NCBI GenBank assembly: GCA_965649825.1
Contig: OZ287707.1
Span: 426,292 to 490,291, forward strand
DNA from: Penicillus capitatus
Lineage: Eukaryota; Plantae; Chlorophyta
Length of the DNA stretch: 64,000 nucleotides
Direction: 5' to 3'
The notes beneath the pieces were generated by a model. The model was given only the letters and a program-made list of their open reading frames with translations. It was not told where the DNA came from and ran no database searches. Position 1 is the first letter of the stretch; each line of letters opens with the position of its first letter. This document shows, one piece after another, positions 5,201 to 64,000 of this stretch. A program made the translations under genes and the position numbers.

Positions 5201-5266
5201 GCGTCGTTGAAAATGCGATCGAATGCTTTACATGTCGACATCTGTCGGCAACCGTGCTGTGTGGGA

Positions 5267-8169
5267 TTACGACGTCCGTGCATTCCGATCGAGGATTTGA
5301 TCCAATAGATTTGAACAGAGAACCGACGTGGAAGGCAAGGCTTGTGAGGGAATCTTCGACCAGTTGGCGAGATCCAGTTGTGTCGCGCTCTCTGCATCGA
5401 CAGAGTCGACATCCATTGCATCGGTGTGTCGAGCAGCAACACCAAAGGCCATTTCAAAGACAGAGGGCATTTTTTCGTTCTCTGTCGCCGAGTCCTCTTC
5501 CGATTTCAGTGTTAAGCTTCCTGTCGAGCATTTGCGATCAGAATGCATTCCGTTGCTGCTCGATACCTGTTTCTGTTTCGATGGCGTACTGGTGTGATGA
5601 AGACAGGATCATCAGAGGGGCATGTGTATGCCTGATACCATTCTCCATTTGGCGACCAGATTTGTACAGAGGTGTGCCTGGCTGGGTAAAGTGAAGGAAA
5701 CGGATGGGGTGGGGTCGTCTGGAATAGAGAACACAGGGTGTGCTGTCTCTGGGATCGAAAACCGCCACGGAAACGCCTCCTCCTGTCCTCTCCCGTTCCC
5801 TGTGCACATTTACAAGGCTCCTTCCTGTACATTAGACGTATGAAAAAGAGCTGACCAGCTGCCGTCTGTTATGTCTCTCAAAGTGACGGCAAATTTATCG
5901 GAACTGGAATCGACAGTGAGACAGTCGATGGCGAGCTTGGATGCCCATCGCACCGTGAGGCTTTGAAGATCCCAGACAACGAGGAGAGAGGCCATCGGAA
6001 TGCAGCCGACCTGACATGCGGCACTGAATAAACAGTGACAGAATGGGATCGTTCTTACTAGAAAATCAGATGCTCCGACAAAACGCAGTTGAGAGAGTTT
6101 CGTTTTCTGTGGAGCATCCGGAAACGATACATGTCCCAATGTCACCAAAGTTGTTGGATCCCACAGTCCCACCCCGGATGGATAAGCCACAGCCAATACA
6201 GAACCGTCACTGCTGAAGCAGCATTCCCCTAGTGGCTGATCTGAACAATATTCCATCGGATGTGACCATCTATTCGTGACACAGACAGAACCTCTGAACG
6301 ATCCAATCGCCTTGCATCTCCACAAGCTGCTCTGATCGGCAAACTGCCTGGTCCACAAACGAAAGCTCCCTTTTGGACTCGTGGTGACAACGAGATCGTC
6401 AACAGGTGAACAGCAGATGGCAGCAATGCCTCCTCTGCATCGCCACTGGTTATTGCTGATGGCACGGCAAAGGAAAGGAGACCAGACTTGTGGGGATCCA
6501 TGACTTCGGTGTTGAGATGAAATGTATTCTCAGAGGCACTCCAGTCAAAAAACCGCACGTCTGTTTTGATCTCGCTGTCGATCAGCTGACTACGAACCGT
6601 CACTGCTGCCAGAACTGTTCCAAGAGGATTGAAGACGATAGATTGGAGAACGGGCTCGGTGGAGTGATGCCCTGGGTCTATTCGGTGCTTCGTTTTCGAT
6701 ACAGCCATTCTGGACACCACCTAACGAATCCTGCTCATCTCAAAATGGACAGAGACCGAGAGACCTGCAGTTTGGCAACGTGTTTGTCCTGGGCCAGATC
6801 ATAGAACTGAACTGAACAGCTGTCGATTGGAAGGACCAGATATCCAGTTCCTGGCTGCACAGCATAACACCGGCCCTCTTGCTGTCGTCGCTCACAGAAC
6901 ACGGATGCCGTGATCCCATAAACCGAGAGTGTCACCTGCCGACACAAATCAGAGAATCTATGGCGTGCATATGTCCATACTTTGTAGTTGGAGCTGTCGA
7001 CGATTTTGAAGCTGTTGTCCTGGAATGCCACGAGAAAGAGTGACGGCCTGTGAGGATGGATCTCCATTGCCGTTGCGTTCAACCCCAGCCTCGGTACAAA
7101 TTTCATGTTCAGATCACTCAAATGCCATGACACCTCCACACCACCATCACCCCAATGAAACACTCCTCATCCTTTACAGCAGGACCATACCAAGACACCT
7201 TCCTCTCCAATAGAAAACAGAAAATGGCCATCGCCTGAGAATCGAAGAGAGGATGCTGCAGAGGCATGCCAGTGAAGGGTGATCGGAATGCGTTCTGCGA
7301 TGATCGACCCCTCGGAGTGCATCATGTTCTGATACAGCAGGATTTTCCCTGAAGTGCATCCCACAGCCAGTTGCTCATCCATTGGATCCACACAGACACA
7401 CTTCACAATGCCTCTCATTCTTTGCCCTGTCACGGTAGCATCGTACGTGCACACGTTCTGGAAATGTCAGATGCCGACAGCTGCGTTGATCGGGAACGGA
7501 TATCAGCGTTGCGTCATCCGTCTTGGAACGGCACACGATGCACAGTGTTTTGCCAGAAGGACTCAAACAGAGCGAAGATCTATGGGATAACTCAAGACAG
7601 AAGCTTTCATCCCGTTGTAGATCGGGCAGTTTATATCGCAGAATCTAAATCCATCCACGCTAACAGCGCAGTGGCACTCAGAAACATGAGCAGGATTGAC
7701 CTTGGACCCTTCTGGCCTCTCTTTGCAGAGACAGCTGACGTACACGACACCCATCACATCGCAGTACTCCTGACCACACCAGCTTTGATGTGACAGGAGA
7801 CGGATGTGCCACAGAGAGCAGTACAGACCATGTCTGTGATTTCGGAGCATTCGGGCAGAACATCGCAAGCGGTCACTCTCCTCTGCAGCACGAAATCCCA
7901 GAGCAGTATCTTCTCTTTCGTCGCCACCACGATCTGCACCGCCCTCTCATTCCATTCATCATGATCCGACAGACCACCTGCGTCGATGCCTCTCCTCCGA
8001 GTGTCGCGATTTTGATCACTCTGTGATGATGCGATTCGGAGATCCGTCGGGCCGTAAGGGCACTGTACACGTAGAGTCCCTTCTCTCCCGCCGTCGCCAC
8101 GTACTTGCCATCGCGTGAGAACGTCGTTCCCCTTCCCACGATCCGTGCTCCGCCGTAGAAGGCAGACAT
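5267..8169 (-). CDS. WDR75: WD40 repeat small-subunit processome protein WDR75/Utp17, multi-exon
   Basis: ATG at 8169 (MSAFYGGARIVGRGTTFSRDGKYVATAGEKGLYVYS); ITLHWHASAASSLRFSGDGHFLFSIGEEGVLVW; second propeller exons; C-terminal LPSTSVLCSNLLDQIL ending at 5267. Confidence 0.85.
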
Positions 8170-8310
8170 GACCTTGTACAAATCCGCCTCGTCTTGGCGT
8201 CTGCTTTGCTCTCTGACCACGCCGACACGGAACGCGATGTACGACAATTCAATCGGTGCCGAGATGAAGGGAATCGTGTCGGGTACGTCCAATGCAGCAG
8301 TCCTATTTCG
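8030..8310. repeat. Direct repeat copy 1 (~281 bp): WDR75 5' coding end plus upstream promoter
   Basis: Aligns with 24551-24830: 2 differences in the 140 coding nt, about 13 differences in the ~141 upstream nt. Confidence 0.97.
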
Positions 8311-9144
8311 TTCCTTTCATCCGTTCCATTTTTGGTTCCCTTCCAGTCAATGATTGAGACAAATGCGACGAAAGAGATGCAAGATTCTCCCAAGATGATG
8401 TGAGAAATGCTCAGAGATACATCGCACTTCACTCCACCCGACGAGCTTACAGAATCCAGCGTCGATCCTCAAAAACAGGGCGAATCGATCGAGCCGTCGA
8501 CACATGCCACATCCAAACTGCAGCGCTGTTAAATAACGAAAAAGGACGGCGGAGACTTAAACACCTCGTTGAATCGACGGAGCTTATAGAGAAAAGCGTT
8601 GCACCTCCTTTCATCCTCCGTCCCGCCGCTCCTTTCAAACTCAATCAACTGGGCCGTCTTTTTCGCTAACTTGTTCGTGCTCTTTTGTCAAGTCATGCTA
8701 ACAGTGGCAGGGATGGCAACACATCCGCGTGCCCCTGTGCCAGCAACGGTCGAAGGAAGGAGGCTTTATTTCGAAGAGTCCTTGAGACAACTGTAAGAAA
8801 TAGAAACTGCTGTCATTGCTACACCACAGTTGCTGAAGAAATCAGGTGATAGAACCTCGGCCTCTGCTTTAATCGACGTTGACTTATGATGCAGATTCTC
8901 GTCCGTCCGTCCGTTGAACGACGAAGATGTTGACCGCGTTTTCCTTAACTGAAGCTATGAAGACGGCAGATCGATGTGATGTCGATCTTGTGCTGCAGAA
9001 TGTAAAACCTATCCGCCTTTTCGCGTTTGCTGGATTGCGTCCACTTCTACGATGAACGCGTGCACAGTGATCGAACCTCCTCGTGAACTCGCCGCCAATG
9101 AACTGGGCCTACCTAATACAGGCAGGTCATCCATTTTCGTAATT

Positions 9145-9860
9145 CTGTCGCGGCAGTACTACGGATCCGCTGCGCGTCCGACGCGACAGTATTGCATCAA
9201 CAGTAGTATTGGCGCGTTCTGATACGCTGCCGCGGTGACAGTACCATCGTGGCAGCGCGAAAGAACGCGCAGATACCATCGTACCTGTGTATAAAAGATC
9301 TTTCTCGTTGTTTTCTTTGTCAAAAAGAAAACAAACGAAAAAGATCTCTATACACTTAGAAAATGCAACCAGTGACAATGACGGAAGCAAGAGCACAGCT
9401 GGGGGCGGCCAACTTCGACTGGGGGATGATCGGGCCGGTGCTGGCCAGGATGGTGGAACACGTGGGGAGGATTAACGGGGCGGTTCGCAGGCGTGGATCG
9501 GCGATAGCGCCGGTGCGTGGAAGGGATGATTTGAGGAATTGGGTGTATCTTTCGGTTCGGGATTCTTTGGCGATCGGCAACCAAGTGGGGGTGGTTACGT
9601 GGCGTGTCGTAATGAACCGTGTACTTGGGCGGTTAATTCACCATGGGGTTACGCAGCAAGGAAATGCAGTTCAAAGGGATGAACTTGTGTGGGAATTTCA
9701 CCTCTTGTGTACGACAGTGAGAAGGCGAGGGGACATTCGGGCCATCGGAGATACCGTGGCAACACACTTTGTGGATTCGTTGTATGACTTATTCGATCCA
9801 AATGTGTAACGTCGTGGTTTGGTTGTTCAAGTTGCGGAAACGCGCACTGTCGCATCAACG
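9145..9860 (+). mobile_element. Hairpin-flanked orphan cassette, copy A (intact ORF)
   Basis: 5' cgcgtccgacgcgacagtattgc (9173-9195, identical at 16512-16534); cagtagtattggcgcgttctg (9201-9221, identical at 16705-16725); inverted repeat 9212-9220/9262-9270; AT-rich palindrome 9287-9355; ORF; 3' motif ggtttggttgttcaagttgcg...tcaac shared with the other copies. Mobility is inferred. Confidence 0.7.
9363..9809 (+). CDS. 148 aa intronless orphan protein of the cassette family
   Basis: ATG to TAA ORF (MQPVTMTEARAQLGAANFDWGMIGPV...RAIGDTVATHFVDSLY). Homologous reading frames at 16853-17295, 22393-22832 and 23023-23178 conserve residues while codons diverge. Confidence 0.8.
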   Translation: MQPVTMTEARAQLGAANFDWGMIGPVLARMVEHVGRINGAVRRRGSAIAPVRGRDDLRNWVYLSVRDSLAIGNQVGVVTWRVVMNRVLGRLIHHGVTQQGNAVQRDELVWEFHLLCTTVRRRGDIRAIGDTVATHFVDSLYDLFDPNV

Positions 9861-9889
9861 TCGCCCATGCACAGAACGTCTCCGTCCGC

Positions 9890-9990
9890 ATCAACGTTGC
9901 CCGCATAAACTGCTTTGTTTTCGGACAATTGCGTGCCATGTGTCCCTCACAGCGACACCTATAACTAGGATGATGCTGTTTTGGCATTTA
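9890..9990 (-). pseudogene. Degenerate gag-like zinc-knuckle remnant
   Basis: YRCRCEGHMARNCP resembles a CCHC knuckle (Cx2Cx4Hx4C) with altered spacing; flanking frames are stop-ridden. Confidence 0.3.
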
Positions 9991-10369
9991 TCGTTTCCGC
10001 ATCTTCAGCTTTTACTTTATCTACTTCTCCGAATTCCTCCGCGGCACATGCTAATTGGCATGGGGACACCCTTCAGTCGTGCTAACGTTTTAGAATCCTT
10101 CTTTCATGTCAAGTTGCTTTTAAGCTTTTACATCGTCATTTTCCAATTATTTAATGCTTAGCTGGTTGGCGCTCAATGTGTCTTGTTTGATAGCTCTGAC
10201 TTTACACGTTAATGACTGCTAATTTGAAAAAAAAAACACTAATATTGTATCAAAGTTCTGTTTATTTCATGACAGGTGGACTCTTTTGACGACAGTTCCA
10301 GTGAAATGCTTCTGACTTCTTTGTCTAGATGTTCATTATCAAATCCGAGTCTTTGAAGGCGGATTTTTT

Positions 10370-10450
10370 GTCGGGATCGTGTTACCGCTTCGAAGAACTC
10401 GGAGTCGAAAGACGCGCGACCGACGACGTTAAAACGTACTCAGATGTCAG
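10370..10450 (+). repeat. ~81 bp dispersed repeat
   Basis: About 85% identical by eye to the reverse complement of 23453-23534 (core gagtcgaaa.acgcgcga.cgacgacgttaaaacg). Confidence 0.9.
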
Positions 10451-12033
10451 TACTGTCACACTAAGGCGCTATTCGTACGGGATGGTGACAGGACGGGACG
10501 TTGATTTAAATGATAAACTTTACTGTCACTCCATCTTTTCGTGTCCTTGGTTGCGCGACGTAACCGTCGCCGCTGGGTCGCGGTAGAAGGCGTGAGTGAG
10601 GATGATTGGGAGTGAGTTCTTGTGAATTTCGCACTGAGGTTCTGTAGAAGCTTCTACAATCTCATTGTGAACACACTCTTGAACTTCAGCGGTTTTTCCT
10701 GATGTCACATCAAGGATCGAGTATTCAAGCGAGGCTCAGACACACAAATCATCTTTCGCTCGAGATCTAAGTTTACACTTGTGTCTGTGAACCACCAACA
10801 AGCTGTTTCTGTTTGTCAACAAACATTCGCTGTCTATCGTCGTTGTAACAGGCTGTCTCTTCGCTGCTACCGTTGGCATGGCCTCCGATACTCTCGCCCA
10901 TCTTCATCTTACCTTAAGATTTCCGACGCGCTTGTGAGATAAGCCAAGCCGGGAAGGACTCCGGTGACAATGCTCTTCCTCCTCAGTTCTCCGGCCAAGG
11001 TGGCGACAAAGGGGAAATACGAGTCGTCCATACAGAGGACGTCGAAAGACAGGTGGAGAAACAGGCTGCCGGAAAAGGGTTCTTCACAAGTACCAGGAAT
11101 GCGAGATTAATTAGAAGACGCTATCGCTGTTAAGTTCACGCGGTGGTTGAGGATTCACTAATCTTAAGAGCTAGCGGCTGCGAAGTTCGGGCTTCGCACC
11201 GTATCCATCACCCGACCGTTATTGAATAGTCATGTCGGAGTCGGACACCCGTCGCGATCGATGGTCGACGCTCCAGTGTAGTTCTGCCACCATCCAACCG
11301 TCTCCGTTGGCAAGGTAAGGGGGCCGATACGACAGCTGCATCTCTAACAAGAATATAAATCAAAGATAGCAAAGGCTCTCCGAGAAACGATTCGGCTTTG
11401 CAAAAACCGCGCCAAAGAAACGCCGGCGACGTGGCTGGTTATGACACCATGAAAGACAAGCTTCAAATGCAACGTCAGAAATAGACGCCGAATCTGGCCA
11501 CCTCTTCATCGGCAGCTGCAGAACCAATGGGTAAGCAAATGATCAGCGGACAATCTCTTGAAACTTCGTCTGTTTGACAGCATCCTACAAAAGAAGCGCT
11601 ACGTCATCGTGAAGCGATCGACAATCGCACTGCTGCATTGCATCCCCCGTTCCGTGCAAAGGAGACGTAGACACGAATTGAAGTGTCGGATAGAATGGGT
11701 CGTTCTTTGGACAGTTCGAGGCAGAGAATTCCACAGCGTGTGAATCCAACGGTCGCTTCAGTGTCTCAGATAAGAGTCGTGCCCACTACACCGAGGCCGG
11801 TGCTCAGTCATACAAGTCTGCCGGTTCCAACAGTGCCCGCTGCTACATGAACACCAACTGACCTAGTTCCGCAAGCTGCAATCATTCAAGGTGTTGAAGG
11901 CCGTGATCAACACAACATAGGACACAGATGGGGAAACATAATCCCATTTGCTGGCAGAGAAACACAGTTTGGCAATGGCTACGGACCGCTGAGGTCGAAT
12001 GCCAGTCTGCCAGCCAGTTGACCCTTTGTTCTT

Positions 12034-12560
12034 TTATTCTTTTGTCAACGAACTTCTCAGACAGATTGTCCTGTCGCCGTCAAAGGCAGCTTGTGTCTCT
12101 TTGAATTTCTCCTGGAGAGAGAAGATTTTCATGCAGGCCTTGTTTGCGTCTGACTCCACATCCATGCTGAACTGTTGTTCCTTTTGAAATAGTTGTTCGA
12201 GCCTCTCTTGCTCCGCGCTTGCCTTGCCACTCATTGCGCTTACGTGCGACATTCTTCTGTCGTTCTTCGACTTCCTGTCGAAGCTTCGCGACTTCTTCCA
12301 GACGAAGCCAGTCGATCGTTCTTCTCTTTTCGCGTAGCTCTTCTTGCACCTCGCACCTTTCTCGCAGCAAGGGCAAACGTGCCCGAAAAGGTCAACATTT
12401 CGTCTGTGTTCACCAACCAGTACCGGCTGTTGTCGTCATAATCGTCCGGCTGCGTCCACACAACTCGTCCGAGTAGTTCAGAATATACCCTTGCGTCTTC
12501 GCCCGCGTCAGTGATGATACTCTTAGCACGGAATTCTTCCAAAACATAGTTCCCGCGCAA
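12034..12560 (-). pseudogene. Frameshifted coiled-coil protein remnant
   Basis: Three overlapping minus-strand ORFs in successive frames (12240-12560, 12080-12376, 12034-12252) join into an E/K/R/Q-rich helical sequence (LLRERCEVQEELREKRR...EQERLEQLFQKEQQ). Confidence 0.45.
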
Positions 12561-12936
12561 GCTTCACTCTTCCTGGCGACTCTGCTCTCTTCTACTTCGT
12601 CGTGCTCGGCGCATCCTTGCAATGCTTTCTTGAAATCCCTTGGTACGTCTAGACGCGTCTAGACACGGCTCGACTTCCGCACAGTAAGGCGCCACAATGC
12701 ACACAGCAAACGCGCAACGTCACACAGACGGAGGTGACCATTCAGCCCTCCAAAAAAGCTGGAGTAAAATAGACGAGCGCGCTTGTCGCCAAGAACAGGC
12801 GAGGCCCCATGCGAAGGTGGCGAGGCAATCGACAGCACGACGACATCAAATACGTCACGGCAAGAATGCCAGCCATCTCTGCAGCAAAAGAAAATGACCC
12901 CAGATAAGGGCATTGTCTTGACCAACCGACAGCTCC

Positions 12937-15900: not shown

Positions 15901-16300
15901 GGACTCGACTAGCAGAGGTCCGCCTCCGCCTGGATTGCCCAGAACGGCAGGTGCGTATTCTGCCGATCCTCCGTCCCAAGAAGCTTCGGGTATGAAGAGA
16001 TACTCGTCGACCGACATCCCCAAGGCGTCGTCTTCGATCATGGGATCATCTCAGAACAGCGAGCTGAATTTTGGTCAGTACTCGGGACAGCCGGAGGGAA
16101 ATCAGACCATCGCTCACGCCTATTCACTCGTGCACGATAATTCTCAGTTCGGCGTGGCCAACACCAGCTCTCTGGAGACGACCATCTCTCCCAGAACCAA
16201 TCAAGACATCGCCTATCCGATCCCTGCCTCGTACGGCATCCCACCCTGCGCCCTGTCAGACAGCTCGCTGTGTGATCTAGGTCCTACGTCACATATCACA
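12937..16300 (+). pseudogene. NB-ARC-like STAND NTPase with winged helix and TPR repeats (NLR-like), disrupted
   Basis: ATG 12937; intron 13055-13102; Walker A ITGLPGIGKTT; Walker B WVLDGLD; GC-AG intron 14203-14255; kinesin-light-chain-type TPRs (AERYFTQALNAQESAYGRDH, ELYTKSLTLREKYLGHRN, HFAEALVIDDRVYGERH). Lesions: stop or frameshift at 13551-13558, in-frame TAA 15133-15135, two frameshifts between ~15200 and 15335. Confidence 0.85.
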
Positions 16301-16339
16301 GTAAGGTTAGCTTTTATTATCTGTCATTACGAATTAAAA

Positions 16340-16372
16340 AACGGTTGTAATGTGTCACACATTACAACCGTT
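16340..16372. repeat. Perfect 33 bp palindrome
   Basis: aacggttgtaatgtgt-c-acacattacaaccgtt (16 bp arms, 1 nt centre). A related hairpin cggttgta-agatcg-tacaaccg lies at 16393-16414. Confidence 0.97.
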
Positions 16373-16447
16373 ATTTTAGTTTTGTACATCGACGGTTGTA
16401 AGATCGTACAACCGCAACATAAGGTACATCACGCGCTGTACATCGGC

Positions 16448-16685
16448 GCAATACAGTCGCGTCGGACGCGCCGCGGATCCGAAGCGGCAGTGCGACGGAT
16501 AAATGACGCGCCGCGTCCGACGCGACAGTATTGCGCAGATGTACGTGATGGCGCAATACTGTCGCGGCAGTGCGACGGATAACTGGCGCGTCCGATGCGA
16601 CAGTATTGCGCAGATGTACGTGATGGCGCAATACTGTCGCGGCAGTGCGACGGATAAGTGGCGCGTCCGATGCGACAGTATTGCG
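16448..16685. repeat. Tandem array of 75 bp hairpin units
   Basis: Units start at 16522, 16597 and 16672 (partial). Each is a 15 bp arm gcgacagtattgcgc, a 14 nt loop agatgtacgtgatg, a 15 bp arm gcgcaatactgtcgc and a 31 nt linker. An additional ~25 bp inverted arm at ~16448-16470 pairs with 16512-16536 (1 mismatch). Confidence 0.95.
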
Positions 16686-16852
16686 TCTACTCTATACGCA
16701 TCGACAGTAGTATTGGCGCGTTCTGCTGCGGTGGTATCGCCACTGCGGCAGCGTATCAGAACGCTCCGATACCATTATGGCTAGAATTTAGGGTTCTCTT
16801 TGAATTTTTTGTTGCAAAAAACAAACGTACAAAACCGTAACTACCAGCCATA

Positions 16853-17295
16853 ATGGAGCCAGTGACTTTTTCAGAAGCCGTGCAACAGCTGGCGCGAACA
16901 AGATTCGACTGGGATATGATCGAGCCGGTTATATCCGAGATGATGGAATACACGGGGAAGTTTGACACGTGGGATGCATTATTTTGTCCGCACTTTCCCC
17001 CGTTTCTGGGTAGGGATGAGTTGCGGGAGAACATGGGTCGCGCGGTTGGCGATTTCATGGAGATTGGCAATACGCCGCGGCAGTTTCGTGGAGAGTCGAC
17101 AAGGACCGTCTGAATGCTCGGATGATTCATTGGGAGGTTATCACACAAGACAATGCGGACCAAAGGGATTGACTTTTGTGGGCGTTTTACCTTTTGTATC
17201 AAACGTTGAAAAAGCGATCGGACGTTCGGGCCATTGGAAAGCAAATGGCAACGAACTTTGTGGATTTTCTGTACACACTGAACACACTAGATTAA
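16853..17295 (+). pseudogene. Disrupted paralog of the 148 aa orphan
   Basis: MEPVTFSEAVQQLARTRFDWDMIEPV...; 1 nt deletion near 17075; then AVSWRVDKDRLNARMIHWEVITQDNADQRD*LLWAFYLL...RAIGKQMATNFVDFLY, with in-frame TGA at 17170-17172 and terminal TAA at 17293-17295. Confidence 0.9.
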
Positions 17296-19503
17296 GGTCG
17301 CGGTTTGGTTGTTCAAGTTGCGAAAAACGCGCGCTATCGCGTCAACAAAAAAGGCCCACCGCGCCAACGCCGATCGCGCACAAACCGCTTCCACGGAGTT
17401 AAATGGCGTAACGCTTGGTGGGACGCACTGTCATAGAGAAAACTGTTCGCAGTTAGAAGCAGGTTTTCACGTGGACAAGACACACAAATGCTTTCGACTA
17501 GAATTTGCACGTCCAGCGCCATGATGTTGAACTAAATAATCCGCGTCCCGCATACCCACTTATCGAACAATCGGAGAAACGAGATGGGAAACCTGGTCAT
17601 AAATTCTTCTGCAAAGCTCACCAATCCATCCGGCAGAGTGACCTCTGTTGAATGTCCATGACGAATGGGAACTTCTTTCGGCCGTCCAACTTACAGAGTC
17701 CACCTGTCAGAGCCAGGATGATAAAACGGATGCAAATCTGAATATGGCGTACTTTCCTTATGAACGGGACAGGCGAAATGCAAGTTCACTCTTTCATCGA
17801 TTCATGGCAACCGTTGTTGTGATATTCTACATTTACAAAAGAACGCTTTAGATGACATTATTGTAACTATGGGTCCGAAGCTGTCGCCGTTCGATACGCG
17901 CTTAACGCGTCAGCGACGATGGCGTATCGCTTAACAAAGACTGTTCAGACGATAATGTTTCGAATTTATGCAATTCCGCGGACAGCTGCGCGAAGGTGGA
18001 CAACAAAATCATCCGATCGTTGGACACACGTTGAGAAAGAAGTTATGCGAAACATAGCAAATGCCATTACACGACATCCATTCGGTTCGATTTATAAGGA
18101 TCGAACACGTCTTGACAGAGAACAGGCCAGAGCAAAGAATCCGGAATCATGGATACAATGCGCACAAAAGCGCTTTCTTTGCTTGAATACCTTTGGATAC
18201 CTTTATCCGATGCATGCCCGTCGCGAACCCATGCAAGCATTCGACTCAAAAACCCAACGTCTTGCCGCCCCACAAACAAAACAATCGAAACCTTGTCTCG
18301 AATGGGCGCTTTTTAGTCTCATCGACATCCCAAAACAAACGAGACCAACAAGTCCCTCAGCGATCTAACCGTCCGACCACAGTACCGGTCCCGCGTCCCC
18401 TGGACCAACTCTCGACGCCTCAGCGCTCGACCTACCGTGGAGCGAAGTAACAAACCCGTCTGGTCTACCTCTCTCCAGAGTCTCCCCCTAGCCGACATAC
18501 GAAGCAATGCTTACACCGACGCAAAATGCCATGGACCACGGCTTGTTAGAAAAACCCCATGCAAAACACCCGAAAAATGTACTTGCGACGGTAAAGAAAA
18601 CAACAAAGACGTTCAGAAAGAAAAACGCATGTCGAGCCACGGCGAAGGCAGAACTCTGGATCAGCATGCCGCGGTCAAAAAAGGTACGTGGCCACCCACA
18701 GCGATACTCATTATCAAGCCATCGTCGCCCCACACTCTCCCCTCTTCGCACTCGTTGGTCGTCGTGCTTTGGCTTCACCACGTATTCGCCATCCATATTC
18801 GCCCCTTCATCACACTGTCGCCGAGCGATGTGACACTGCCTTGTTCTGTGAGGGTCAACCGTGCGAAGGGGTGCTGCCTGTCTTGTCAACTGCGTCTTGG
18901 GACGCCTTTCTCTGGCCCTGAACACGAGCTGACTCACCATTCTAGAAGGGTTACGTCAGCAGGCGACTATATAATGCACAATCTGAACCTTGTTTTACCT
19001 TCTCCGAACACTGTAACAAGTCTTCTGCTGTTATCTTCTGGCGCGGCGCTTCCGCGGTGACACACACCTCATTGAGTAACGCATTAGATCGCCAATTCCT
19101 TATCCTCTTGCGTTGCCCCCTGACATTGACTTCTCTCCTCACCCAGCGCCTCCGACGAAGCCTAAACCGCACGCCAGACCGCTTCAACGGTGTCGCGTAG
19201 GTTTTTAGATGGAGACAATTTGAACGGTGGGCGCATGTAAACCTTTGAAACGTAAAGTCTTACAAAACGAAAGACAAGATCTGTACGTCTACAACGCTTC
19301 TATAGAGTGCTATATTAAGTAACAAAAAAGAATAGTCTGCGAAGATACCGAAATCTACTCGGAATCTGTGACGTAGAGGCCGCGAGTCTATTTGTGGATA
19401 GGAAGGTATAGAGAACCTACGACCTGTTGCTTGGCGATCGACACAAGTGTAAGTAGATGAGCCCGTCGTTAAGGGCGTGTTGGCTTAACACAGCAACGGT
19501 CGC

Positions 19504-20181
19504 CTATCTTCTTGACCTCTTCCGAGAAATCTTAGATGAACTCCCCGCATTGCTGTCGACCTTCCGCTTCGCATCGTCTGCTTTTTTCAAACTTGCCATC
19601 CATTCTTCTCGAGCACGCGTGCTTCGAAGGCGGTATCGGCGCTTCACCTCTCGCACTCTTGTCAGTTCCTCTTCGTACGACAAGCTCCGCCTACGGCGTT
19701 TAGAACCGCTTCCCTCAGGCTTCGCCGTCGTTTCCACAACCACGTCCCCATGCGCGTCATCGACCGCCGCTTCGGCCATTTCTTCCGGCCTGGCCATATC
19801 GACTAGGACGAACTCGAGGAAGCGAATCTCCAGTGTGCGTCGTCGTCGACGGACCCCCGATATGGTGGCGCTGAGCTGGGACCTCATGTATTCTGCAAAC
19901 ATTACGATCTTGAAGAAAGCAACTTCGTCGGATGGGTCGATTAAGTTCCTCGCCGCCATAGCGCTACGCAAAGTGTTAACGAGGTCAGCACAGGTGCAAA
20001 CACGGGCACCGCTACGTGTAGTGCCGTCTGCTCCGCTAGCACCACAAGGAGGCCTACTTACACGTAAAGGAGAAACGACGGCAGGCAGCTTAAGCACCCT
20101 GTTCAGCCTAGCCAGCCAATCCAAACTTCGCAGCCTACACACCGCATGACACGTGCGGTCTTCTCCGAAGATGGCTCTCAT
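19504..20181 (-). CDS. Hypothetical protein with basic NLS-like and coiled-coil C-terminus
   Basis: 225-codon ORF from ATG 20181; SKRRRRS and charged helical tail. No family recognised, and an antisense ORF of similar length overlaps it. Confidence 0.3.
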   Translation of the reverse strand: MRAIFGEDRTCHAVCRLRSLDWLARLNRVLKLPAVVSPLRVSRPPCGASGADGTTRSGARVCTCADLVNTLRSAMAARNLIDPSDEVAFFKIVMFAEYMRSQLSATISGVRRRRRTLEIRFLEFVLVDMARPEEMAEAAVDDAHGDVVVETTAKPEGSGSKRRRRSLSYEEELTRVREVKRRYRLRSTRAREEWMASLKKADDAKRKVDSNAGSSSKISRKRSRR

Positions 20182-21365
20182 ATGCACAATACAAATCTAA
20201 TTTGCGATCGCGACTCGAAATCTCGCACTTCTCGGGATTAGTGGCATCGTATCGCAAACCGGATAAAGAATGTCGCGTCAAAGTATCGAAAATAAACAAA
20301 TCCATTACGGTTATCTCTCGCAAAATGCTGGAGTCGTGACGTGGGGAGAGTTTAGCGGCCGTTCTCGTGATCTGATAGTGGCGCGGATGCATACAACAAA
20401 AAGATGACGAAGAAACATGGGTGACGAGGCATTCGCAATAGGTATGGCAATTAATGGAGAAGCGATCTCCTACCGAAAGATGTCTCCCATCAACGCAGAG
20501 ACCGAAAAGGTTTCGGGCGAGAGGAGTAATGCACTAGAAGGATCTCGAGCACCTGATTGGAGTACTGTCGTACTTAAGGCGAATTATCATGGATCTCGTG
20601 AGGCTCGTTGTAAAGACCGCTCGGCAGCCCCTTCACTTTCCACTCCCTCCCAGTTGTCATCGGATCGTATCGTATCGGACATGAAACTCTTCCTGGTTTT
20701 CGTGTCGGGCGAGGACGCCGAGAAGGGGGAGCAGAAGGGATTTGGTCGTCTTCGGAACGACTCGTCTTGACACAGGCGCAGTGGAAATCTTGGTTAAGAT
20801 GATGACGGGTTAGCGAGGATGGCTAACACCAAACCGGGAGTTCGGCCAAGGTCGACTTGATACAGCAACGATAAATAGCAGATGACTTTGACAACAAATT
20901 GTATGATACAGCAAACACAAACTTATACACAGGATATAAGCCCAAAGCGAATATTTTGTGTCCGGCACTCGCTTTTATGCTTCTCCGGTGTTAGGGCCGA
21001 CAGGACAAGGTAGGAAATCCCAGGAGTATCAGGAGCGAGTTCCCAATAAGGTTCTAAAGCTCGTAAGAACTTCAACGTGAAATTCGAGACAAACTCACAA
21101 TCCTCGTTGTTGTGACTTCGTCGCAGAATCCAAGCGCCGCGATAGTTACGTCACGTACTCAAGGACGCAAAACAACAGATGACAAATTAACGTCCACTCA
21201 TTACCGTCGAGGTGCACTGCGCAAACACACGGATTACAGACGAGACAGAGTTGTTACAGAGGACGTCTTTAAGTATCCAGATGTTGATATTACCCGGAAG
21301 GGGACAGCTGTCCAAAGAGTACAACAGCGAAGCTAACAGCTGTCCCTTGACAATTACAACGTCCT

Positions 21366-22031
21366 ATCAGTAAATCGGTTAGAATAGCGCCGTATTTTCA
21401 CACTTACATGATGTTGTCTCTGGCCAAGACGAGATTGGACGGTCTAGCCGCCAGAAAGTTCGTGGAGAACATGTGCTGCAAGTGTGAGGTCTGCAGTATT
21501 GGAAAAGAAGACGTTGGAGAGGGCCTCAACTTCATTGAAGTCAACGAAACATCAGACGGCGAAGCGGTCGACATGTTTGGTTCACGATTACAACAAGCGA
21601 ATGCCCATTCGAAGTGTGTCAAAGTCGCCGTTGATTACTTCAGCAGATACGCAGAAACCGAAACAGTGCGTTCTCCGACATCAGTGGACATTGAGGAATT
21701 CATTGCAGACTGGATACGAAAGCATGGGAGAATCGGCATGCTCGTTGCAGGCTCTGACTCGCAGTTCACCTCGCCTGGTTTTGCCACATAGACCAAAAAC
21801 CGAAGAATACAACTCAGGCCCGGCGCAGCTTATCACGCTCCTCAAATGGACTGGTTAGGGAACGACACAAACGCTACTCGGTCACATCCAACGATTGAGG
21901 ACTGCATTCGGCCGTCCATGGAATCAATTTGTGTTAGACACTCAAGACGCAGTCAACTCGACTCTGAACATGGTGAGCAATGTCAGTGGACAGTTGTCCA
22001 CCTTCGTGCAGCTGTCCAAAGACCTGCATAA
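21366..22031 (+). pseudogene. Retroviral/Ty3-gypsy-type integrase remnant
   Basis: One frame: H2C2-like YFHTYMMLSLAKT...MCCKCEVC; rve core VAVDYFSRYAET...IADWIRKHGRIGMLVAGSDSQFTS; in-frame TAG 21789-21791; then RRIQLRPGAAYHAPQMDWLGNDTNAT, matching the 'YHPQ.NG..ER.N' region in degenerate form. Confidence 0.75.
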
Positions 22032-22344
22032 ATTCTTACAATTATTGTTCGAACAGTCTTTGTAATCCTGTCAGAATGACTAGAGCAGTCACATCGTGAC
22101 TGCCTAGATTTCCGAGGGTTCTGTCTCCGAGGGGGCACTTACTAAGGGTTTACGTCACCTCAGGATCCTTACAAATACGGGAACGTGGCCCTGTAGATAC
22201 TTTGCTCTGCAACACAGTGAAGATTTCCCCTAACAAATCCTTACGCCTTCGTCGTTAACCCGTTGTCCGTTGACAAACACGACACCGGATGAACCCAAGG
22301 CGCTCCGGTTGCGTCTGCGTGGTGGGCGTTTTTTGAAAACGTTG

Positions 22345-22890
22345 ATGTGATAGCGCGCGTTTTTTCGAAACTTAAATAACCAAACCGCAGTCTTAATGCA
22401 TATTGTTCAATGAATACAAAACATTCACAAAGTTTGTTGCCATTTCCTTCCCAAAGGATTGAACATCCCTTTTTCTTTTGAACCGTCGACACAAAAGAAA
22501 AAACGCCCAAATGAGTGCATTCCCTTGGTTTATATTGTCCTCTGTCATAACTTCCCGAAAAAACAACCTCTCTCGCACCCGTTGTCTGATGTCATCCCAT
22601 GCATCAAACCCGGCGTTACAGCCAATGATAAAAAGTCACGAACCGAATAATACACCTTCTCCCTCAAAGAATCCCTTCCCCAAACCGGCGGGATCTGCAG
22701 ACCATGCAAACGAACCGACACATTCACCGTCCCCGTGTAGTGCACCATCTCCTCCACCACCGGCTTCATCAACACCCAGTTAAACCCTGTCGTCTCAAGT
22801 TCTGTTTGCGCGTCTTTAAAGGAAACTGGCTGCGACAGTATTGCAACGCAGTACGTGACGGCGCAGTACTGTCGCGTCGGACGCGTTCAT
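22345..22890 (-). mobile_element. Hairpin-flanked orphan cassette, copy C2 (5'-deleted, frameshifted ORF 22832-22393)
   Basis: Hairpin 22832-22885 is fused directly to codon 2 (QPVSFKDAQTELETTGFNWVLMKPVVEEMVHYTG...). A frameshift leads into ERLFFREVMTEDNINQGNALIWAFFLL...FGKEMATNFVNVLY*. The 3' motif ggtttggttatttaagtttcg...tcaac follows. Confidence 0.8.
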
Positions 22891-23022
22891 CGCGGAAGTG
22901 TACAATTCGACAGCTTTGGGGGAGCGGATTCGTTCTTTTAACAAGAATGTGCGTTGACAATGGCTGTAGGTTACACAATAGGTCACGCAGTAATGTCATT
23001 TTTGAGAAGAGGATTTTGTATC

Positions 23023-23345
23023 ATGCACCGGCGCGATCGCCGAACCATGCCTGCGAACCTCCCCGTTAAACCACCCCATATGTTCCACCATCTTGTCCAC
23101 CACCGGCCCGATCAGCCCCCAGTCGAAGTTGGCCGCCCCCGGGTGTGCTCTTGCTTCTGTCATAGTGACAGATACCATTCGTGGCAGTGTATAAGAGATC
23201 TTTTTTGGTTGTTTTCTTTTTGACAAAGAAAACAAAAAAGAGTATCTTTTATACACTGCCACGAATGGTATCTGCGCGTTCTGCCGCGCTGTTGCGGTGG
23301 TACTGTCACCGCGGCGAATCACGACTCGCCAATACCACTTTAGTT
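23023..23345 (-). mobile_element. Hairpin-flanked orphan cassette, copy C1 (3'-truncated)
   Basis: ATG 23178, MVSVTMTEARAHPGAANFDWGLIGPVVDKMVEHMG..SAIAPV, closely similar to copy A at DNA level until ~23023. Upstream palindrome 23169-23274 has 26 bp perfect arms. Confidence 0.85.
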
Positions 23346-23452
23346 GTGTATAGACAAGTTCGCAGCTGTTGGAGGCTAAGGTTAGGAATCCTTGACCATT
23401 AGGGGTATTTAAATAGGACTTCCGACCTTTGATCAATCTCGTATCCCTGGGG

Positions 23453-23534
23453 CTGACATTCGAGTGCGTTTTAACGTCGTCGTTCGCGCGTTTTTCGACT
23501 CTGAGTTTCTTCAAAGTGATCACATGATCCCGAC
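23453..23534 (-). repeat. ~82 bp dispersed repeat (partner of 10370-10450)
   Basis: Reverse complement aligns with 10370-10450. Confidence 0.9.
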
Positions 23535-23559
23535 ACAGACACTCTTTGAATACTAGGCA

Positions 23560-24450
23560 CGCTCCCATCCTCCCCGTTCACAGAAGTGCTGCATCTTGCA
23601 AACTTGGTAACATCCGAACAAGACGAAGAATTTCTTTTCAGGTCGGCACTCTTCCTCCTGGTTGGTGGATAGACAAAGCGTCTCGGCACCGGATAGCAAC
23701 AACGCCTCGAATCCGGCCGGCGTCAGCCATCGTTCATCAACTGCTTGCAGATTCGGTAGCGACGCCATCGGGCGTGACGGCGACAGGCGGACGGCATTAC
23801 AAACTGCGACTCAAGTACGGCCTTCTGGGCCGTCCGCCGTCCAATAACCCGGCTACCAAGTCGTAACAAGAAGTCCATCCTTTGTCTTGTCCTCCTTGCC
23901 GAACCTCTACTGATACAGTTGCAGGACACTTCGTTAGGATGCAGTACTAAAGTGTTTCGTGTTAAGATCTGTGGATCGATATTGAATCTGTTCAACTGCA
24001 GGCCACGAGAACAACGACTTTGTTCTCCGTGTCAGGAAAAAGAACGATGTTAGGTTGTCAGGCTATGCGTTGTTTGTTGCAATCTGTATGCTCATAGATC
24101 GTGATGGTGGCGGAGGTCAAGTGACAGTGGGCAATCAACTTCAGAGGCCGAATGTGCACAATTCAGCCGTATTAGCACCGAAGTCATTGCAGGATGCATC
24201 TCGGATCCAGTCAGGAGATGCGGGATTCGCTATACTCTTCTTAGGTTCAGCGGCAGATGCTTTCTCCCTTCTTGACAATTTAGAGATCAAGATAGACGGG
24301 TATCCAGGTAAGGATCGTCGAAGCCCTTAAAGCATCCAAGGAATGCAGATCGGATTGTAAGGGCGGCAGTTGAGCTAGCCAAACTCTGGAGAACAGACAA
24401 GTTCTTGCAAAGGCTTGATGTACGAATGAGTGTGGTGTCTTCCTTTGTCA
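23560..24450 (-). pseudogene. Possible decayed leucine-rich-repeat gene
   Basis: Stop-interrupted fragments with LRR-like spacing: SLCKNLSVLQSLASSTAALT, SLNCQEGRKHLPLNLRRV, LSLDLRHHHDL, LPNLQAVDERWLTPAGFEALL. Confidence 0.3.
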
Positions 24451-24550
24451 TCGACACTGTGTTCTAGGCTGCTATGATTGTTGCTGATGCAGATACCGCG
24501 CCGGAGATCACCGGCCGAGGCGACGTCTTAGAACCGCACGATCGAATTCT

Positions 24551-24830
24551 TGCGATTCGGAGATCCGTCGGGCCGTAAGGGCACTGTACACGTAGAGTCC
24601 CTTCTCTCCCGCCGTCGCCACGTACTTGCCATCGCGTGAGAACGTCGTTCCCCTTCCCACGATCTGTGCTCCGCCGTAGAAGACAGACATGACCTTGTAC
24701 AAATCCGCCTCGTTTTTCCGTCCGCTTTGCTCTCTGGCGACACCGACACGGACGCGATGTACGACAATTCAATCGGTGCTGAGATGAAGGGAATGGTGTC
24801 GGGTACGTCCAATGTAGCAGTCTTATCTCG
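24551..24830. repeat. Direct repeat copy 2: truncated WDR75 5' fragment (ATG at 24690, minus strand) plus promoter, ending one base before the SABRE ATG
   Basis: Aligns with 8030-8310; similarity stops exactly at 24830. Confidence 0.97.
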
Positions 24831-33323: not shown

Positions 33324-33392
33324 TGCTGCAATGCATTGTTTGTGTAACCATTACACTCAAGTGCATTTCCATGATCCATAACGAACAGCGTC

Positions 33393-35064: not shown

Positions 35065-35126
35065 GATGGGACGTTTCTTAAGGACACCTTATCGCAAACA
35101 CGCGACCCGCATGCCACATCGCACAA

Positions 35127-35855: not shown

Positions 35856-36099
35856 GGATTTCAAAAGAGGCATCGCCCATTCTGATAGTGTGGTGTGGCG
35901 AAGGGGACGTGTGCTGGCGTATCAACGCGTTTGGAAAGAATTCGGTCAGAGGGAAGAGATCTCGGCACATACTGATTCTGATCATCGCTCCGAGGAATGA
36001 TCAGAAATCTCACGCGCCTTGTTTAGCTGTATCCAGAAAATTCGAGAGAAGGTGTGTAAACGCTGACAGAATCAAAATATCCAACCAGTCACACACTGT

Positions 36100-63668: not shown

Positions 63669-64000
63669 TCTTGTTTTGTTTTCTTGTTTTCTTGTTGTGT
63701 GTGTTTTGTTTTTTTATCTGTTTATCCTGTTTTTTCTTCAGTTTTGTTATTCTTGTTTTCTTGTTTTCTTGTTGTGTGTGTTTTGTTTTTTTATCTGTTT
63801 ATCCTGTTTTGTCTTCAGTTTTGTTTTTCTTGTTTTATTTGCCTTGTTATGTGTGTTTTCTTTTTTTGTCCTATTTATCCTGTTTTGTTGTCAGTTTTGT
63901 TATTCTTGTTGTTCTTATTTTGTTTTATTTTATTTGTCTTGTTCTTGTTGTTCTTATTTTGTTTTATTTTATTTGTCTTGTTCTTGTTGTTTTGTTTTTT
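63669..64000. repeat. T-rich low-complexity repeat with ~77 bp and 39 bp periodicities
   Basis: tttatcctg recurs at 63721, 63798 and 63874; a 39-mer ttcttgttgttcttattttgttttattttatttgtcttg is tandemly duplicated near the end. Confidence 0.9.

Follow-up and report, generated by a model that had tools for sequence, protein, structure and literature searches.

How can a 16-kb insertion enter the promoter shared by two conserved, presumably essential genes of a compact genome without the loss of either gene? The locus that raises this question lies in the window studied here, a stretch of 64,000 nucleotides from Penicillus capitatus (contig OZ287707.1), where an island (island 1) stands between a WDR75 gene on its left and a SABRE-like gene on its right, with a direct repeat of host sequence at either side (Table 1). 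The repeats occupy 8030–8310 (281 nt) and 24551–24830 (280 nt), exactly the limits given in the first-pass annotation, and each holds 140 nt of WDR75 coding sequence together with 141 or 140 nt of upstream sequence. Copy 1 currently serves WDR75, and the promoter of copy 2 (24691–24830) currently serves the SABRE-like gene. The WDR75 start codon, on the minus strand, is found at 8169–8167 in copy 1 and at 24690–24688 in copy 2, where the stranded fragment retains an ATG-initiated ORF of 60 codons (24508–24690). Copy 2 ends at 24830 and the plus-strand ATG of the SABRE-like gene begins with the next base, 24831, as had been noted before. Island 1 is located precisely at the junction of two complete repeat copies, and there is no partial third copy.

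The two copies differ by 14 substitutions and one indel (15 differences, 5.3%), which are unevenly distributed. The earlier counts, 2/140 differences for coding sequence and 13/141 for the promoter, are correct (Fisher p=0.006), and the contrast becomes sharper by position, with no differences in the left 114 nt versus 15 in the right 167 nt (p=0.0005).

The site is empty in the one related genome used for comparison (L001; dS ~0.56), where WDR75 and the SABRE-like gene stand head to head around a single 282-bp segment, with nothing in between and their start codons 142 bp apart. The first-pass annotation had proposed that the genes were once a head-to-head pair with a shared promoter and that synteny would reveal this; in this relative, that is the arrangement found. 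L001 581–8858 aligns with window positions 1–8310 and L001 8577–21253 with 24551–37209, and with these parts of the window only, so that L001 8577–8858, single-copy in that genome, aligns with both repeats, and island 1 is unmatched. Since the repeats are 5.3% apart, versus 34.5% differences between the species at 4-fold sites (JC 0.46; dS 0.56), the insertion postdates the species split. From the two promoter halves that have become superfluous, T is estimated at ~0.064, and the insertion time would be roughly a fifth of the divergence from the relative. The window and an ENA record, two versions of the contig that differ by 0.7–1% inside the island, both contain the two junctions. The term accessory, as applied earlier to the island, is shown to hold between species only, since both versions of this genome have it.

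Table 1. Features at the WDR75/SABRE-like locus (positions are those of the window; M2 positions refer to the second locus).
Feature	Position	Strand	Description
WDR75 gene	5267–8169 (3' limit approximate)	-	Several short introns; ATG 8169–8167; collinear with L001
W1, internal WDR75 segment including intron sequence	7000–7521	-	94.5% identical copy at island 2 right edge
Repeat copy 1	8030–8310		WDR75 codons 1–46 at 8030–8169; complete 141-bp upstream region 8170–8310
Inserted island 1	8311–24550	.	16,240 bp; absent from relative
Cassette A	9138–9859	+	Hairpins, TATA-like box, 50-nt palindrome 9296–9347, intact 148-aa ORF 9363–9809
NLR-like (P-loop NTPase + TPR) pseudogene	12726–16300	+	95.7% identical to island 2 copy
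Array of 75-nt hairpin unit (16438–16690), then degenerate cassette B	16438–17887	+	76% identity to M2 17035–18447
Block collinear with island 2 left end	18024–19698	+	blastn, tblastx
Cassettes C (truncated) and D (frameshifted)	22311–23346	-	Inverted; form inverted repeats with cassette A
Right-end block	23346–24550	+	92% identical to island 2; homology ends exactly at boundary 24550
Repeat copy 2	24551–24830		Stranded WDR75 5' fragment 24551–24690; 140-bp promoter 24691–24830
SABRE/BLTP2-like gene	24831–33323	+	~2,800 aa, several exons, N-terminal hydrophobic helix

The identity of the left-hand gene as WDR75 is supported by Pfam matches of Beta-prop_WDR75_2nd (PF23769, E=1e-8) on the ORFs 5810–6358 and 6229–6720, and by a match of WDR75_1st (PF23869), precomputed on orthologous ORFs, to the equivalent of ORF 7167–7418. 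An in-frame stop at 7167–7169 points to an intron within segment W1. For the right-hand gene, the name SABRE is backed by a remote homologue, P0019, with a Hobbit match of 1.5e-9, but the family match of the gene itself is weak: PF10344 (Hobbit/FMP27/BLTP2) on the C-terminal exons reaches E=0.001 and 16.6 bits, under the cut-off of 24.5, in a collinear placement. Gene size and the N-terminal helix would fit the SABRE/BLTP2/Hobbit/Fmp27 family. The N-terminus (MAYVSLL...) and the ATG are conserved in L001, and an 869-aa exon is 84% identical to P0002. The host also has a CFAP65 gene, and therefore probably a flagellated stage.

Neither L001 nor the rest of the window contains a match to island 1, the ends of which carry no TIR, LTR or other terminal inverted or direct repeats of their own. 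One component of island 1 is a palindrome-rich, lineage-restricted cassette, present in at least four copies that are 66–85% identical at the nucleotide level. Predicted folding is strong for cassette A (z=-7.8) and for the hairpin array with cassette B (z=-4.6), and the cassette A ORF compared with its paralogue P0004 gives dN/dS 0.72 at dS 0.42. A search of limited sensitivity among 5.8 billion proteins found the cassette protein family on this contig only, and no homologue was detected among the proteins of the relative. As the divergence among the cassette paralogues predates the flanking duplication, the insert would have arrived already assembled. The NLR-like pseudogene matches AAA_16/nSTAND3/NACHT/NB-ARC and TPR_12 in Pfam, and is frameshifted and 5'-truncated compared with intact ORFs of L007. 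The remaining DNA of the island is anonymous, and the greater part of island 1 is dead DNA. Outside the NLR and cassette ORFs, all stop-to-stop segments of at least 55 aa in island 1 and at least 65 aa in the second island described below were scanned with Pfam, and in both islands P-loop and TPR domains alone were found, with no recombinase, transposase, integrase or RT domain and no match to DUF3435. Cassettes and an NLR-like pseudogene are thus present as the first-pass annotation had it, but the TE debris that it listed is unverified, since neither such domains nor terminal repeats were found.

A second, paralogous island (island 2), which goes beyond the earlier description, is situated on the same contig ~100 kb from island 1 and has the same bracketing architecture. 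Its neighbours are a DHBP-synthase gene and, on the other side, a divergent gene, and it is flanked by a duplicated intergenic segment (M2 7346–7774 versus 22086–22490, 92.8% identical) of 405–429 bp, compared with 281 bp at locus 1. At locus 2 the right end of the duplication is 43 nt 5' of a probable ATG. As at locus 1, the insert separates two complete copies precisely where they would meet, and its junctions are blunt, with 0–1 nt of microhomology. The islands have the NLR, cassette and right-end content in common, in that order. Identity varies widely between blocks (76–96%) and the block order appears circularly permuted. The frameshift is common to both NLR copies, which places the death of the gene before the separation of the islands. 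There is no homology between the ends of the two islands, and there are no shared termini, TIRs or LTRs. Homology stops at the right boundary of island 1, and island 2 runs on for 860 bp and a 523-bp WDR75 fragment (M2 21564–22084, corresponding to window 7000–7521 by blastn), which is 94.5% identical to WDR75 of this genome versus 84.7% to that of the relative. The presence of a second island suggests that the process is recurrent.

The substitution pattern in the repeats provides evidence for two later processes. In the 70 bp proximal to the SABRE-like gene, one change falls on the long between-species branch, one on copy 2 and four on copy 1 (P ~0.0004–0.009), which argues that copy 1 has lost constraint on this half of the promoter. 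The released and retained promoter halves taken together show 9 versus 4 changes (p=0.13), not significant alone. For the coding part, the fragment in copy 2 has one derived change versus ~9 expected (P=0.001), evidence that the WDR75 coding fragments have been held alike by gene conversion. Site 8089 is T in the relative and in the ENA allele of copy 1 and C in copy 1 of the window, as in copy 2, an allele pattern that is a signature of gene conversion. The first-pass annotation had found the divergence of promoter and coding parts odd and had pointed to promoter subfunctionalisation or partial gene conversion; this comment holds, with signs of relaxed constraint in one half of the promoter (four changes in copy 1) and of gene conversion in the coding part (site 8089).

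We consider it probable that the locus arose by one break-repair insertion with target duplication, followed by loss of constraint on the SABRE-proximal half of the copy 1 promoter and by gene conversion between the coding parts. In the ancestor, one 140-bp intergenic promoter would have driven both genes in divergent directions, WDR75 on the minus strand and the SABRE-like gene on the plus strand. After the split from the relative, pre-existing composite DNA, comprising an already-broken NLR-like gene and an array of old cassette paralogues, would have been copied or captured from a paralogous island and have entered this promoter in a single repair event. The two breaks, at least 281 bp apart, could have been nicks in opposite strands that were then filled in, or could have struck sister chromatids at different positions; alternatively, a template switch could have returned behind its departure point. 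In each case the segment between the breaks would end up on both sides of the insert. The repeats, the empty site, the content of the insert, the second island and the pattern of substitutions are observed. That insertion and duplication were a single event is inferred from the position of the insert, which at both loci falls precisely between the copies; break repair and a role for selection are likewise inferred. With all of the shared promoter inside the duplicated segment, each gene retains a promoter, which is probably why the insertion survived in a gene-dense genome. The same process would have operated at the second divergent intergenic region ~100 kb away. Later, the SABRE-proximal 70 bp of copy 1, otherwise almost invariant between species, would have lost constraint, and gene conversion would have left the two WDR75 coding fragments with hardly any differences.

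Some observations count against this reading. The mechanism is read from its end product, and blunt junctions fit staggered-nick fill-in and other end-joining routes alike. Break repair does not account for the exact coincidence of the right end of the duplication with the SABRE ATG, or for its position 43 nt ahead of the probable ATG at locus 2. The stop of inter-island homology at the island 1 boundary demands an extra step: either the duplication at locus 1 originally measured at least 1.3 kb (7000–8310) and was then trimmed by deletion, or the donor from which island 1 was copied resembled island 2.

A single crossover would also be expected to leave foreign DNA between direct repeats of host sequence, and the first-pass annotation had suggested a Campbell-type route. 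A circle carrying a 281-bp copy of the WDR75 5' end and promoter would here recombine homologously with the chromosomal copy. Island DNA can indeed hold WDR75-derived sequence, as the 523-bp fragment in island 2 demonstrates, and the apparent circular permutation of the blocks would suit a circle. We nevertheless find this route unlikely and without support, as the Pfam scan found no integrase or recombinase in either island, and island 2 is flanked by a different duplicated host segment, so that each circle must first have captured its own future target. Furthermore, the WDR75 fragment of island 2 (7000–7521) is not the segment duplicated here (8030–8310), and no circle or hybrid copy has been observed. 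The same low probability is given to an undescribed cargo element that would be mobilised in trans, insert at divergent promoters and produce long target duplications of variable length, with the palindromic cassettes as its cis sites. The resemblance of the islands in bracketing and in NLR, cassette and right-end content, their strong conserved palindromes, and a cassette family confined to this contig in the protein search, the sensitivity of which was limited, all speak for such an element; the islands, however, have no shared termini, TIRs or encoded enzyme, and just two copies are known, both decayed-looking.

A further proposal of the first-pass annotation, that a tandem duplication opened a landing pad, is disfavoured and, in our view, quite improbable. 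Slippage or unequal exchange would first have duplicated the 281 bp, and successive insertions would later have filled the neutral joint, which would agree with the several event layers suggested by the mosaic island and its 76–96% identity blocks. Random insertion into a dispensable zone of ~200 bp would however split a copy, and the later DNA must have hit the copy junction exactly at two independent loci; moreover, the flanking repeats are of more recent origin than the cassette paralogues that they enclose. We hold it very improbable that the polarity is reversed, i.e., that the island predates the species split and was lost from the relative. Recombination between the 281-bp direct repeats would restore the exact L001 arrangement, and gene conversion means that repeat divergence could understate age, but the SABRE-proximal half of copy 1, which is unneeded and unconverted, has 4/70 changes versus ~16 expected for a pre-split duplication, the WDR75 fragment in island 2 is closer to this genome than to the relative, and the proteins of the relative yielded no cassette homologue. 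Finally, a haplotype or paralogue misjoin is hardly credible, even in a metagenome HiFi-style assembly at ~45x with a paralogous island 100 kb away and an ENA record that differs inside the island, given that the repeat copies differ at 15 sites and are each joined to unique sequence on both sides, that both junctions are identical in the two contig versions, that the NLR–cassette–right-end order recurs in island 2, and that a misjoin inside the island would leave both junction copies in place.

If the break-repair reading is correct, the promoter duplication came from the insertion event itself, and the locus would represent a natural experiment in which a bidirectional promoter is split into two single-purpose copies. 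The 70 bp adjacent to the SABRE-like gene has begun to decay solely in copy 1, which has ceased to serve that gene, so a functional element may be mapped from sequence alone. Insertions of this kind could be a general route for lineage-specific NLR-type islands into gene-dense eukaryotic genomes. A broader proposal, which we consider rather unlikely, is that the islands stand for a recurrent undescribed insertion process, or a trans-mobilised NLR/palindromic-cassette cargo element, that always duplicates 0.3–1.3 kb of a divergent-promoter target. This would allow insertion into essential promoter regions to be tolerated, and in function would parallel, in a eukaryote, the bacterial islands that restore the tRNA gene they target.

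Bacterial genomic islands and prophages in tRNA genes integrate by Campbell recombination with an island-encoded integrase and the same att core in every copy. As in those systems, direct host repeats bracket the island and the duplication preserves target gene function. Unlike in them, no integrase was found in the Pfam scan of the islands described here, and the host segments that flank the two islands (281 and ~415 bp) are unrelated to each other, for which reason a site-specific integrative island was rejected. Duplications of these lengths, together with the absence of transposase, integrase or RT domains and of TIRs or LTRs, also led us to reject a classical DNA, LTR or non-LTR transposon. 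The Starships of Pezizomycotina carry a DUF3435 tyrosine-recombinase captain at the 5' end and short direct repeats or TIRs (PMC9156397, PMC10104507). They resemble the present islands as large lineage-specific insertions, in which NLR-like cargo is frequent (PMC9156397, PMC10104507). In contrast to Starships, neither island has short direct repeats or TIRs, and neither matches the DUF3435 captain or any other recombinase, so this candidate was set aside as well.

Insertional duplications also arise by FoSTeS/MMBIR and by ectopic DNA capture at double-strand breaks, and MMBIR junctions usually show 2–5 or more nt of microhomology. The present case is similar in being a mosaic, multi-kb copy of another locus that lacks element termini and has co-copied donor flank (the WDR75 fragment of island 2), but differs in its 0–1 nt of junction microhomology. 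With respect to the later fate of the promoter, duplication-degeneration-complementation (DDC), reportedly proposed by Force et al. in 1999, classically concerns duplicated genes that partition enhancers. Once a shared regulatory region has been duplicated, either copy is free to lose what only the other gene requires. A shared regulatory region is duplicated here too, from a single ancestral promoter common to both genes (L001, ATGs 142 bp apart), and copy 1 shows relaxed constraint on its SABRE-proximal half; the signal of degeneration in copy 2 is not significant. Unlike in DDC, two different genes partition one duplicated bidirectional promoter.

A close parallel is found in the staggered-break duplications at inversion breakpoints, for which isochromatid and chromatid models have been described in Drosophila and primates (reviewed in PMC7584159). 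In both situations host sequence between offset breaks, tens to hundreds of bp in length, comes to lie at either side of the rearranged DNA, with variable length, end-joining-like joints of little or no microhomology, and no need for an element-encoded enzyme. In the inversions, the duplications are inverted and surround the inverted segment, whereas here they are direct and surround a 16-kb ectopic insertion, and what is duplicated is a whole bidirectional promoter, which leaves both neighbouring genes functional.

The window contains a single long-range direct repeat (families D2 and D5, separated only by a 1-nt indel), and pairwise alignment confirms the two copies reported in the first-pass annotation, with sharp edges at which identity begins and ends abruptly. 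Each copy includes a minus-strand ATG (8169–8167 in copy 1 and 24690–24688 in copy 2) that opens MSAFYGGARIVGRGTTFSRDGKYVATAGEKGLYVYSALTARRISES.... From copy 1 this frame runs on into a gene of several exons, and the ORFs further downstream in that gene match the Pfam WDR75 beta-propellers; in copy 2 it exits the repeat after codon 46 and meets a stop after 60 codons. The stranded fragment at copy 2 retains its ATG and upstream region and forms a 60-codon ORF into island DNA; its transcription, divergent to that of the SABRE-like gene, may persist. That gene occupies ~8.5 kb of the plus strand, and its exon 1 begins at 24831 with ATGGCGTACGTC... (MAYVSLLFYLLAFISTLLFLG), bearing out the earlier observation that copy 2, with its last base at 24830, ends one base before the ATG. 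No single ORF of this gene has a Pfam match, and its concatenated C-terminal exons match Hobbit/FMP27/BLTP2 below the cut-off (E = 0.001, 16.6 bits), collinear with the C-terminus of the model. An exhaustive HMMER search returned 15 homologues, with a significant Hobbit match in one of the eight scanned against Pfam. Of the two gene names first proposed, WDR75 thus stands, while the identity with SABRE/BLTP2 is tentative, and because of this weak match we use the label SABRE-like.

Features of the two loci, in coordinates of the window and of M2 (the merged segments L004 and L005, which carry island 2)
Feature	Window	M2	Strand	Remarks
Repeat copy 1	8030–8310			beside WDR75 (−)
Island 1	8311–24550			16,240 bp
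Cassette A	9138–9859		+	sole copy with intact ORF
NLR-like gene	~12.7–16.6 kb			Pfam AAA_16/nSTAND3/NACHT/NB-ARC P-loop and TPR_12
Tandem array of 75-nt hairpin units	16438–16690 (16.4–16.7 kb)
Cassette B	16509–17887	17035–18447	+
Block X	18024–19698	7864–8404		common block, present in island 2
Basic coiled-coil-like ORF segment	19504–20187	8246–8467	−	…SYEEELTRVREVKRRYRLRSTRAREE…
Cassettes C and D	23346–22311		−
Anonymous DNA				within island 1
Stranded WDR75 fragment	24508–24690		−	at copy 2
Repeat copy 2	24551–24830			beside SABRE-like gene (+)
Island 2		7346–22490		14.3 kb; ENA ERZ25074695 ctg340467 record, ~796.4–810.7 kb
Locus 2 repeat, left copy		7346–7774
Locus 2 repeat, right copy		22086–22490
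Common block, NLR pseudogene				3.6 kb, 95.7% identical, identical frameshift in both islands
Common block, cassette copies				both islands
Common block, right end	23346–24550			1.2 kb, 92% identical

Among 5.8 billion proteins, a single relative of the 869-aa SABRE-like exon was found: P0002, which is 84% identical and is encoded on a 2.24-Mb ENA contig. The surrounding 22.7 kb (L001) align with the window in exactly two blocks, L001 581–8858 with window 1–8310 and L001 8577–21253 with window 24551–37209, and the overlap between them (L001 8577–8858) is the repeated segment, present as a single copy. L001 itself lacks long direct repeats. The WDR75 and SABRE-like ATGs of the relative are positioned back to back, 142 bp apart, with nothing between. 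This is the empty site that the first-pass annotation had proposed to look for, and the central part of its reading is right: an ancestral head-to-head pair was split by a 16-kb island specific to this lineage, and the shared promoter is now found on both sides. The host genome is eukaryotic, with short introns and ~50% GC, and a CFAP65 gene is located nearby in the relative.

The polarity comparison is made with this one relative, the sole one in the searchable data; alignment of the SABRE ORF to the JGI metagenomes gave no relatives. Between the two genomes, 34.5% of the fourfold degenerate sites in the SABRE-like exon differ (JC 0.46), with an NG86 dS of 0.56 and a dN/dS of 0.15. The repeat copies are 5.3% divergent, and polarisation by L001 assigns 8 derived changes to copy 1 and 7 to copy 2. 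The promoter halves that became dispensable, i.e., the SABRE-proximal half of copy 1 and the WDR75-proximal half of copy 2, have accumulated 9 changes in 141 nt, which implies an age of the duplication of ~0.06 substitutions per site, or roughly one quarter of the per-lineage distance to the relative. The low divergence of the copies and the number of changes in the dispensable halves show the insertion to be derived and younger than the species split; it is unlikely that the relative once had the island and lost it.

Collinearity with the relative is interrupted once more at window ~37,209 (L001 21,253–22,712). Past this point a 935-aa NB-ARC/NACHT/HEAT gene is found in the relative, and a PS_pyruv_trans gene (38203–39375) in the window. 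This break may represent another lineage-specific NLR insertion, in the relative. Two tandem-repeat arrays unrelated to the island are found at 61049–61522 and 63676–63905, one with a period of ~50 nt in a stretch of 56% GC, the second T-rich with a 77-nt period.

Island 1 is without match elsewhere in the window or in L001. Compared with the intact ORFs of a 69%-identical homologue, its NLR-like gene lacks the N-terminal 190 residues and contains several frameshifts; it is a pseudogene. The homologue is found on L007, a 6,982-bp Logan contig (SRR20820735) from an unrelated sequencing run, where an apparently intact NLR (ORFs of 553, 256 and 351 aa) occupies positions 2476–6110, at 69% DNA identity to the island pseudogene. 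A protein search with one chimeric query, made of the NLR ORFs and the ORF flanking locus 2, gave this distant NLR (P0007/L007) as its sole match, the self-matches being absent as well, and no other outside relative of the island cargo was found. At least four palindrome-rich cassettes of 0.7–1 kb are also present, each with GC-rich hairpins, a TATA-like box, a 50-nt near-perfect palindrome (z = −7.8) and an ORF of ~145 aa. The palindrome (9296–9347 and 23194–23264) is conserved and sits between the TATA-like box and the ORF ATG, the z-score being that of the DNA fold, and the GC-rich hairpins have stems of 15–16 bp (16438–16690 and 22829–22885). Among the 5.8 billion proteins, the cassette family has matches on the window's contig only; its ORFs have no Pfam match, and an AlphaFold model from a 7-row alignment had a pLDDT of 48, too low for use. 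Cassette A and its island 2 paralogue differ with a dS of 0.42 and a dN/dS of 0.72. A search of the JGI metagenomes with a hairpin 18-mer gave 17 matches of 21–29 nt, all due to chance.

Six-frame Pfam scans of both islands detected P-loop and TPR domains only. In island 1, the NLR and cassette ORFs were scanned separately; none of the other stop-to-stop segments of 55 aa or longer has a Pfam match, nor does an integrase-looking ORF at 21408–21791. Island 1 has no terminal inverted or direct repeats and no CpG depletion, and scans of the window for tRNAs and Rfam families were negative. Of the cassettes, pseudogenes and TE debris initially described, the cassettes and the NLR pseudogene are therefore retained, and TE debris lacks support. 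The basic coiled-coil-like ORF segment, for which no Pfam match was obtained, is conserved at the protein level between the islands.

The cassette proteins identify a second, paralogous island ~100 kb from island 1 on the same 894-kb contig, with four blocks in common (see table). Island 2 is bracketed by a host direct repeat of 405–429 bp (92.8% identical, with small indels), flanked by a minus-strand DHBP-synthase gene and by a gene on the plus strand with its probable ATG 43 nt past the right copy. As at locus 1, a divergent intergenic region is duplicated around the insert, and island 2 makes promoter-duplicating insertion appear recurrent. The homology in the right-end block ends exactly at 24550, the boundary of island 1, in a blunt junction. 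Past this block, island 2 extends through 860 bp of unique sequence to a 523-bp copy of an internal part of WDR75 (window 7000–7521, intron included), which is 94.5% identical to WDR75 of its own genome versus 84.7% to that of the relative, and which meets the right repeat with no more than 1 nt of microhomology. Beyond this, the junctions revealed no microhomology or common terminal motifs, and the extreme ends of the two islands are non-homologous. Cassette B and block X are neighbours in island 1, and in island 2 each is near a different end; the islands have the look of circular permutations of one another, or of derivatives of a tandem array.

Between the window and the ENA record of its contig (L002, L003 and L006) there are 110 differences, all but seven inside the island, mostly in 12.7–24.25 kb (0.7–1%). 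Six of the seven are in the left flank and one in copy 1, and 24251–38490 is free of differences. The divergence at 12,700–24,250 is confined to the island, with 14 kb of right flank identical and the left flank nearly so, which points either to a divergent haplotype block or to higher local diversity. Conversion by island 2 was considered as the source of the allelic differences in the NLR block and rejected; the counts are symmetric (11 versus 13), which points to allelic divergence and not paralogue mixing. Both junctions and the overall order are identical in the two assembled versions, and a misjoin is therefore unlikely.

The copies differ at 2 of 140 sites in the coding part and 13 of 141 in the upstream part (Fisher p = 0.006), as originally counted, and the contrast is even sharper between the left 114 nt (0 differences) and the right 167 nt (15; p = 0.0005). 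Between species, changes common to both window copies number 1 in the SABRE-proximal 70 bp, compared with 9 across the WDR75-proximal 71 bp and 10 across the 140 coding nt; the SABRE-proximal 70 bp are under the tightest constraint in the segment. After the duplication, these 70 bp have changed once in copy 2, which serves the SABRE-like gene, and four times in copy 1, which no longer does; under unchanged constraint, four changes on the short copy 1 branch have a probability of about 0.0004–0.009, depending on the assumed age. This supports relaxed constraint in the SABRE-proximal half of copy 1, and the subfunctionalisation suggested in the first-pass annotation is accordingly limited to that copy: neither the reciprocal pattern in the WDR75-proximal half of copy 2 (5 versus 3 changes) nor the pooled contrast (9 versus 4, p = 0.13) reaches significance. 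The coding fragment left behind in copy 2 has one derived change, versus about 9 expected if neutral (P = 0.001). At site 8089, copy 1 of the ENA version has the ancestral T, as in L001, and copy 1 of the window has C, the base found at the equivalent site of copy 2 in both versions. This is a signature of gene conversion between the copies, which would account for the shortage of changes, and the partial conversion proposed earlier gains support for at least the left 114 nt.

As for the mechanism, a one-step break-repair insertion with target duplication is the most likely route, and one that we favour with moderate confidence. DNA would be copied or captured from a paralogous locus along with neighbouring sequence, and one break-repair event would both insert it and duplicate the target. 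A replicative template switch returning behind its departure point would give an identical product. A single event is indicated because the insert at both loci is located exactly between two complete copies, and the shared sequence of the islands and the WDR75 piece are expected if the insert was taken from a paralogous locus with adjoining DNA. The flanking repeats are far younger than the cassette paralogues of island 1, so the DNA arrived pre-assembled. The WDR75 fragment beside the right-end block of island 2 suggests one history in particular: the original duplication at locus 1 may have reached back to ~7000 (1.3 kb or more), island 2 would then be a copy of that arrangement, and a deletion at locus 1 would finally have trimmed the right-hand copy to 281 bp. 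In the alternative, an island-2-like donor would have been the template for island 1, with the WDR75 homology perhaps priming the copying. Both histories would explain why the homology ends exactly at 24550. Selection likely acted as a filter, since with intergenic regions of 140 bp the survivors would be those that leave a full promoter on each side.

That the islands represent a novel type of cargo element, or a novel insertion pathway, is in our judgement improbable, although the second island and the recurrent look of the process lend the idea some weight. The tandem duplication first envisaged as a landing pad, filled later, is disfavoured, since insertion into an existing duplicate would be expected to split a copy, unlike the two complete copies at both loci. 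The unequal duplication lengths (281 versus 405–429 bp), the blunt junctions and the lack of an enzyme or terminal repeats argue against a transposase-type staggered cut and site-specific integration. Pfam scans found no recombinase in either island, and nothing points to a self-encoded integration system.

Among published mechanisms, the nearest to the proposed one-step break-repair insertion is the staggered-break model, put forward for duplications at the breakpoints of inversions, in which overhangs between paired single-strand breaks are filled in or, alternatively, sister chromatids broken at different positions are joined (PMC7584159). The model was described for inversion breakpoints, whereas the event considered here is an insertion.
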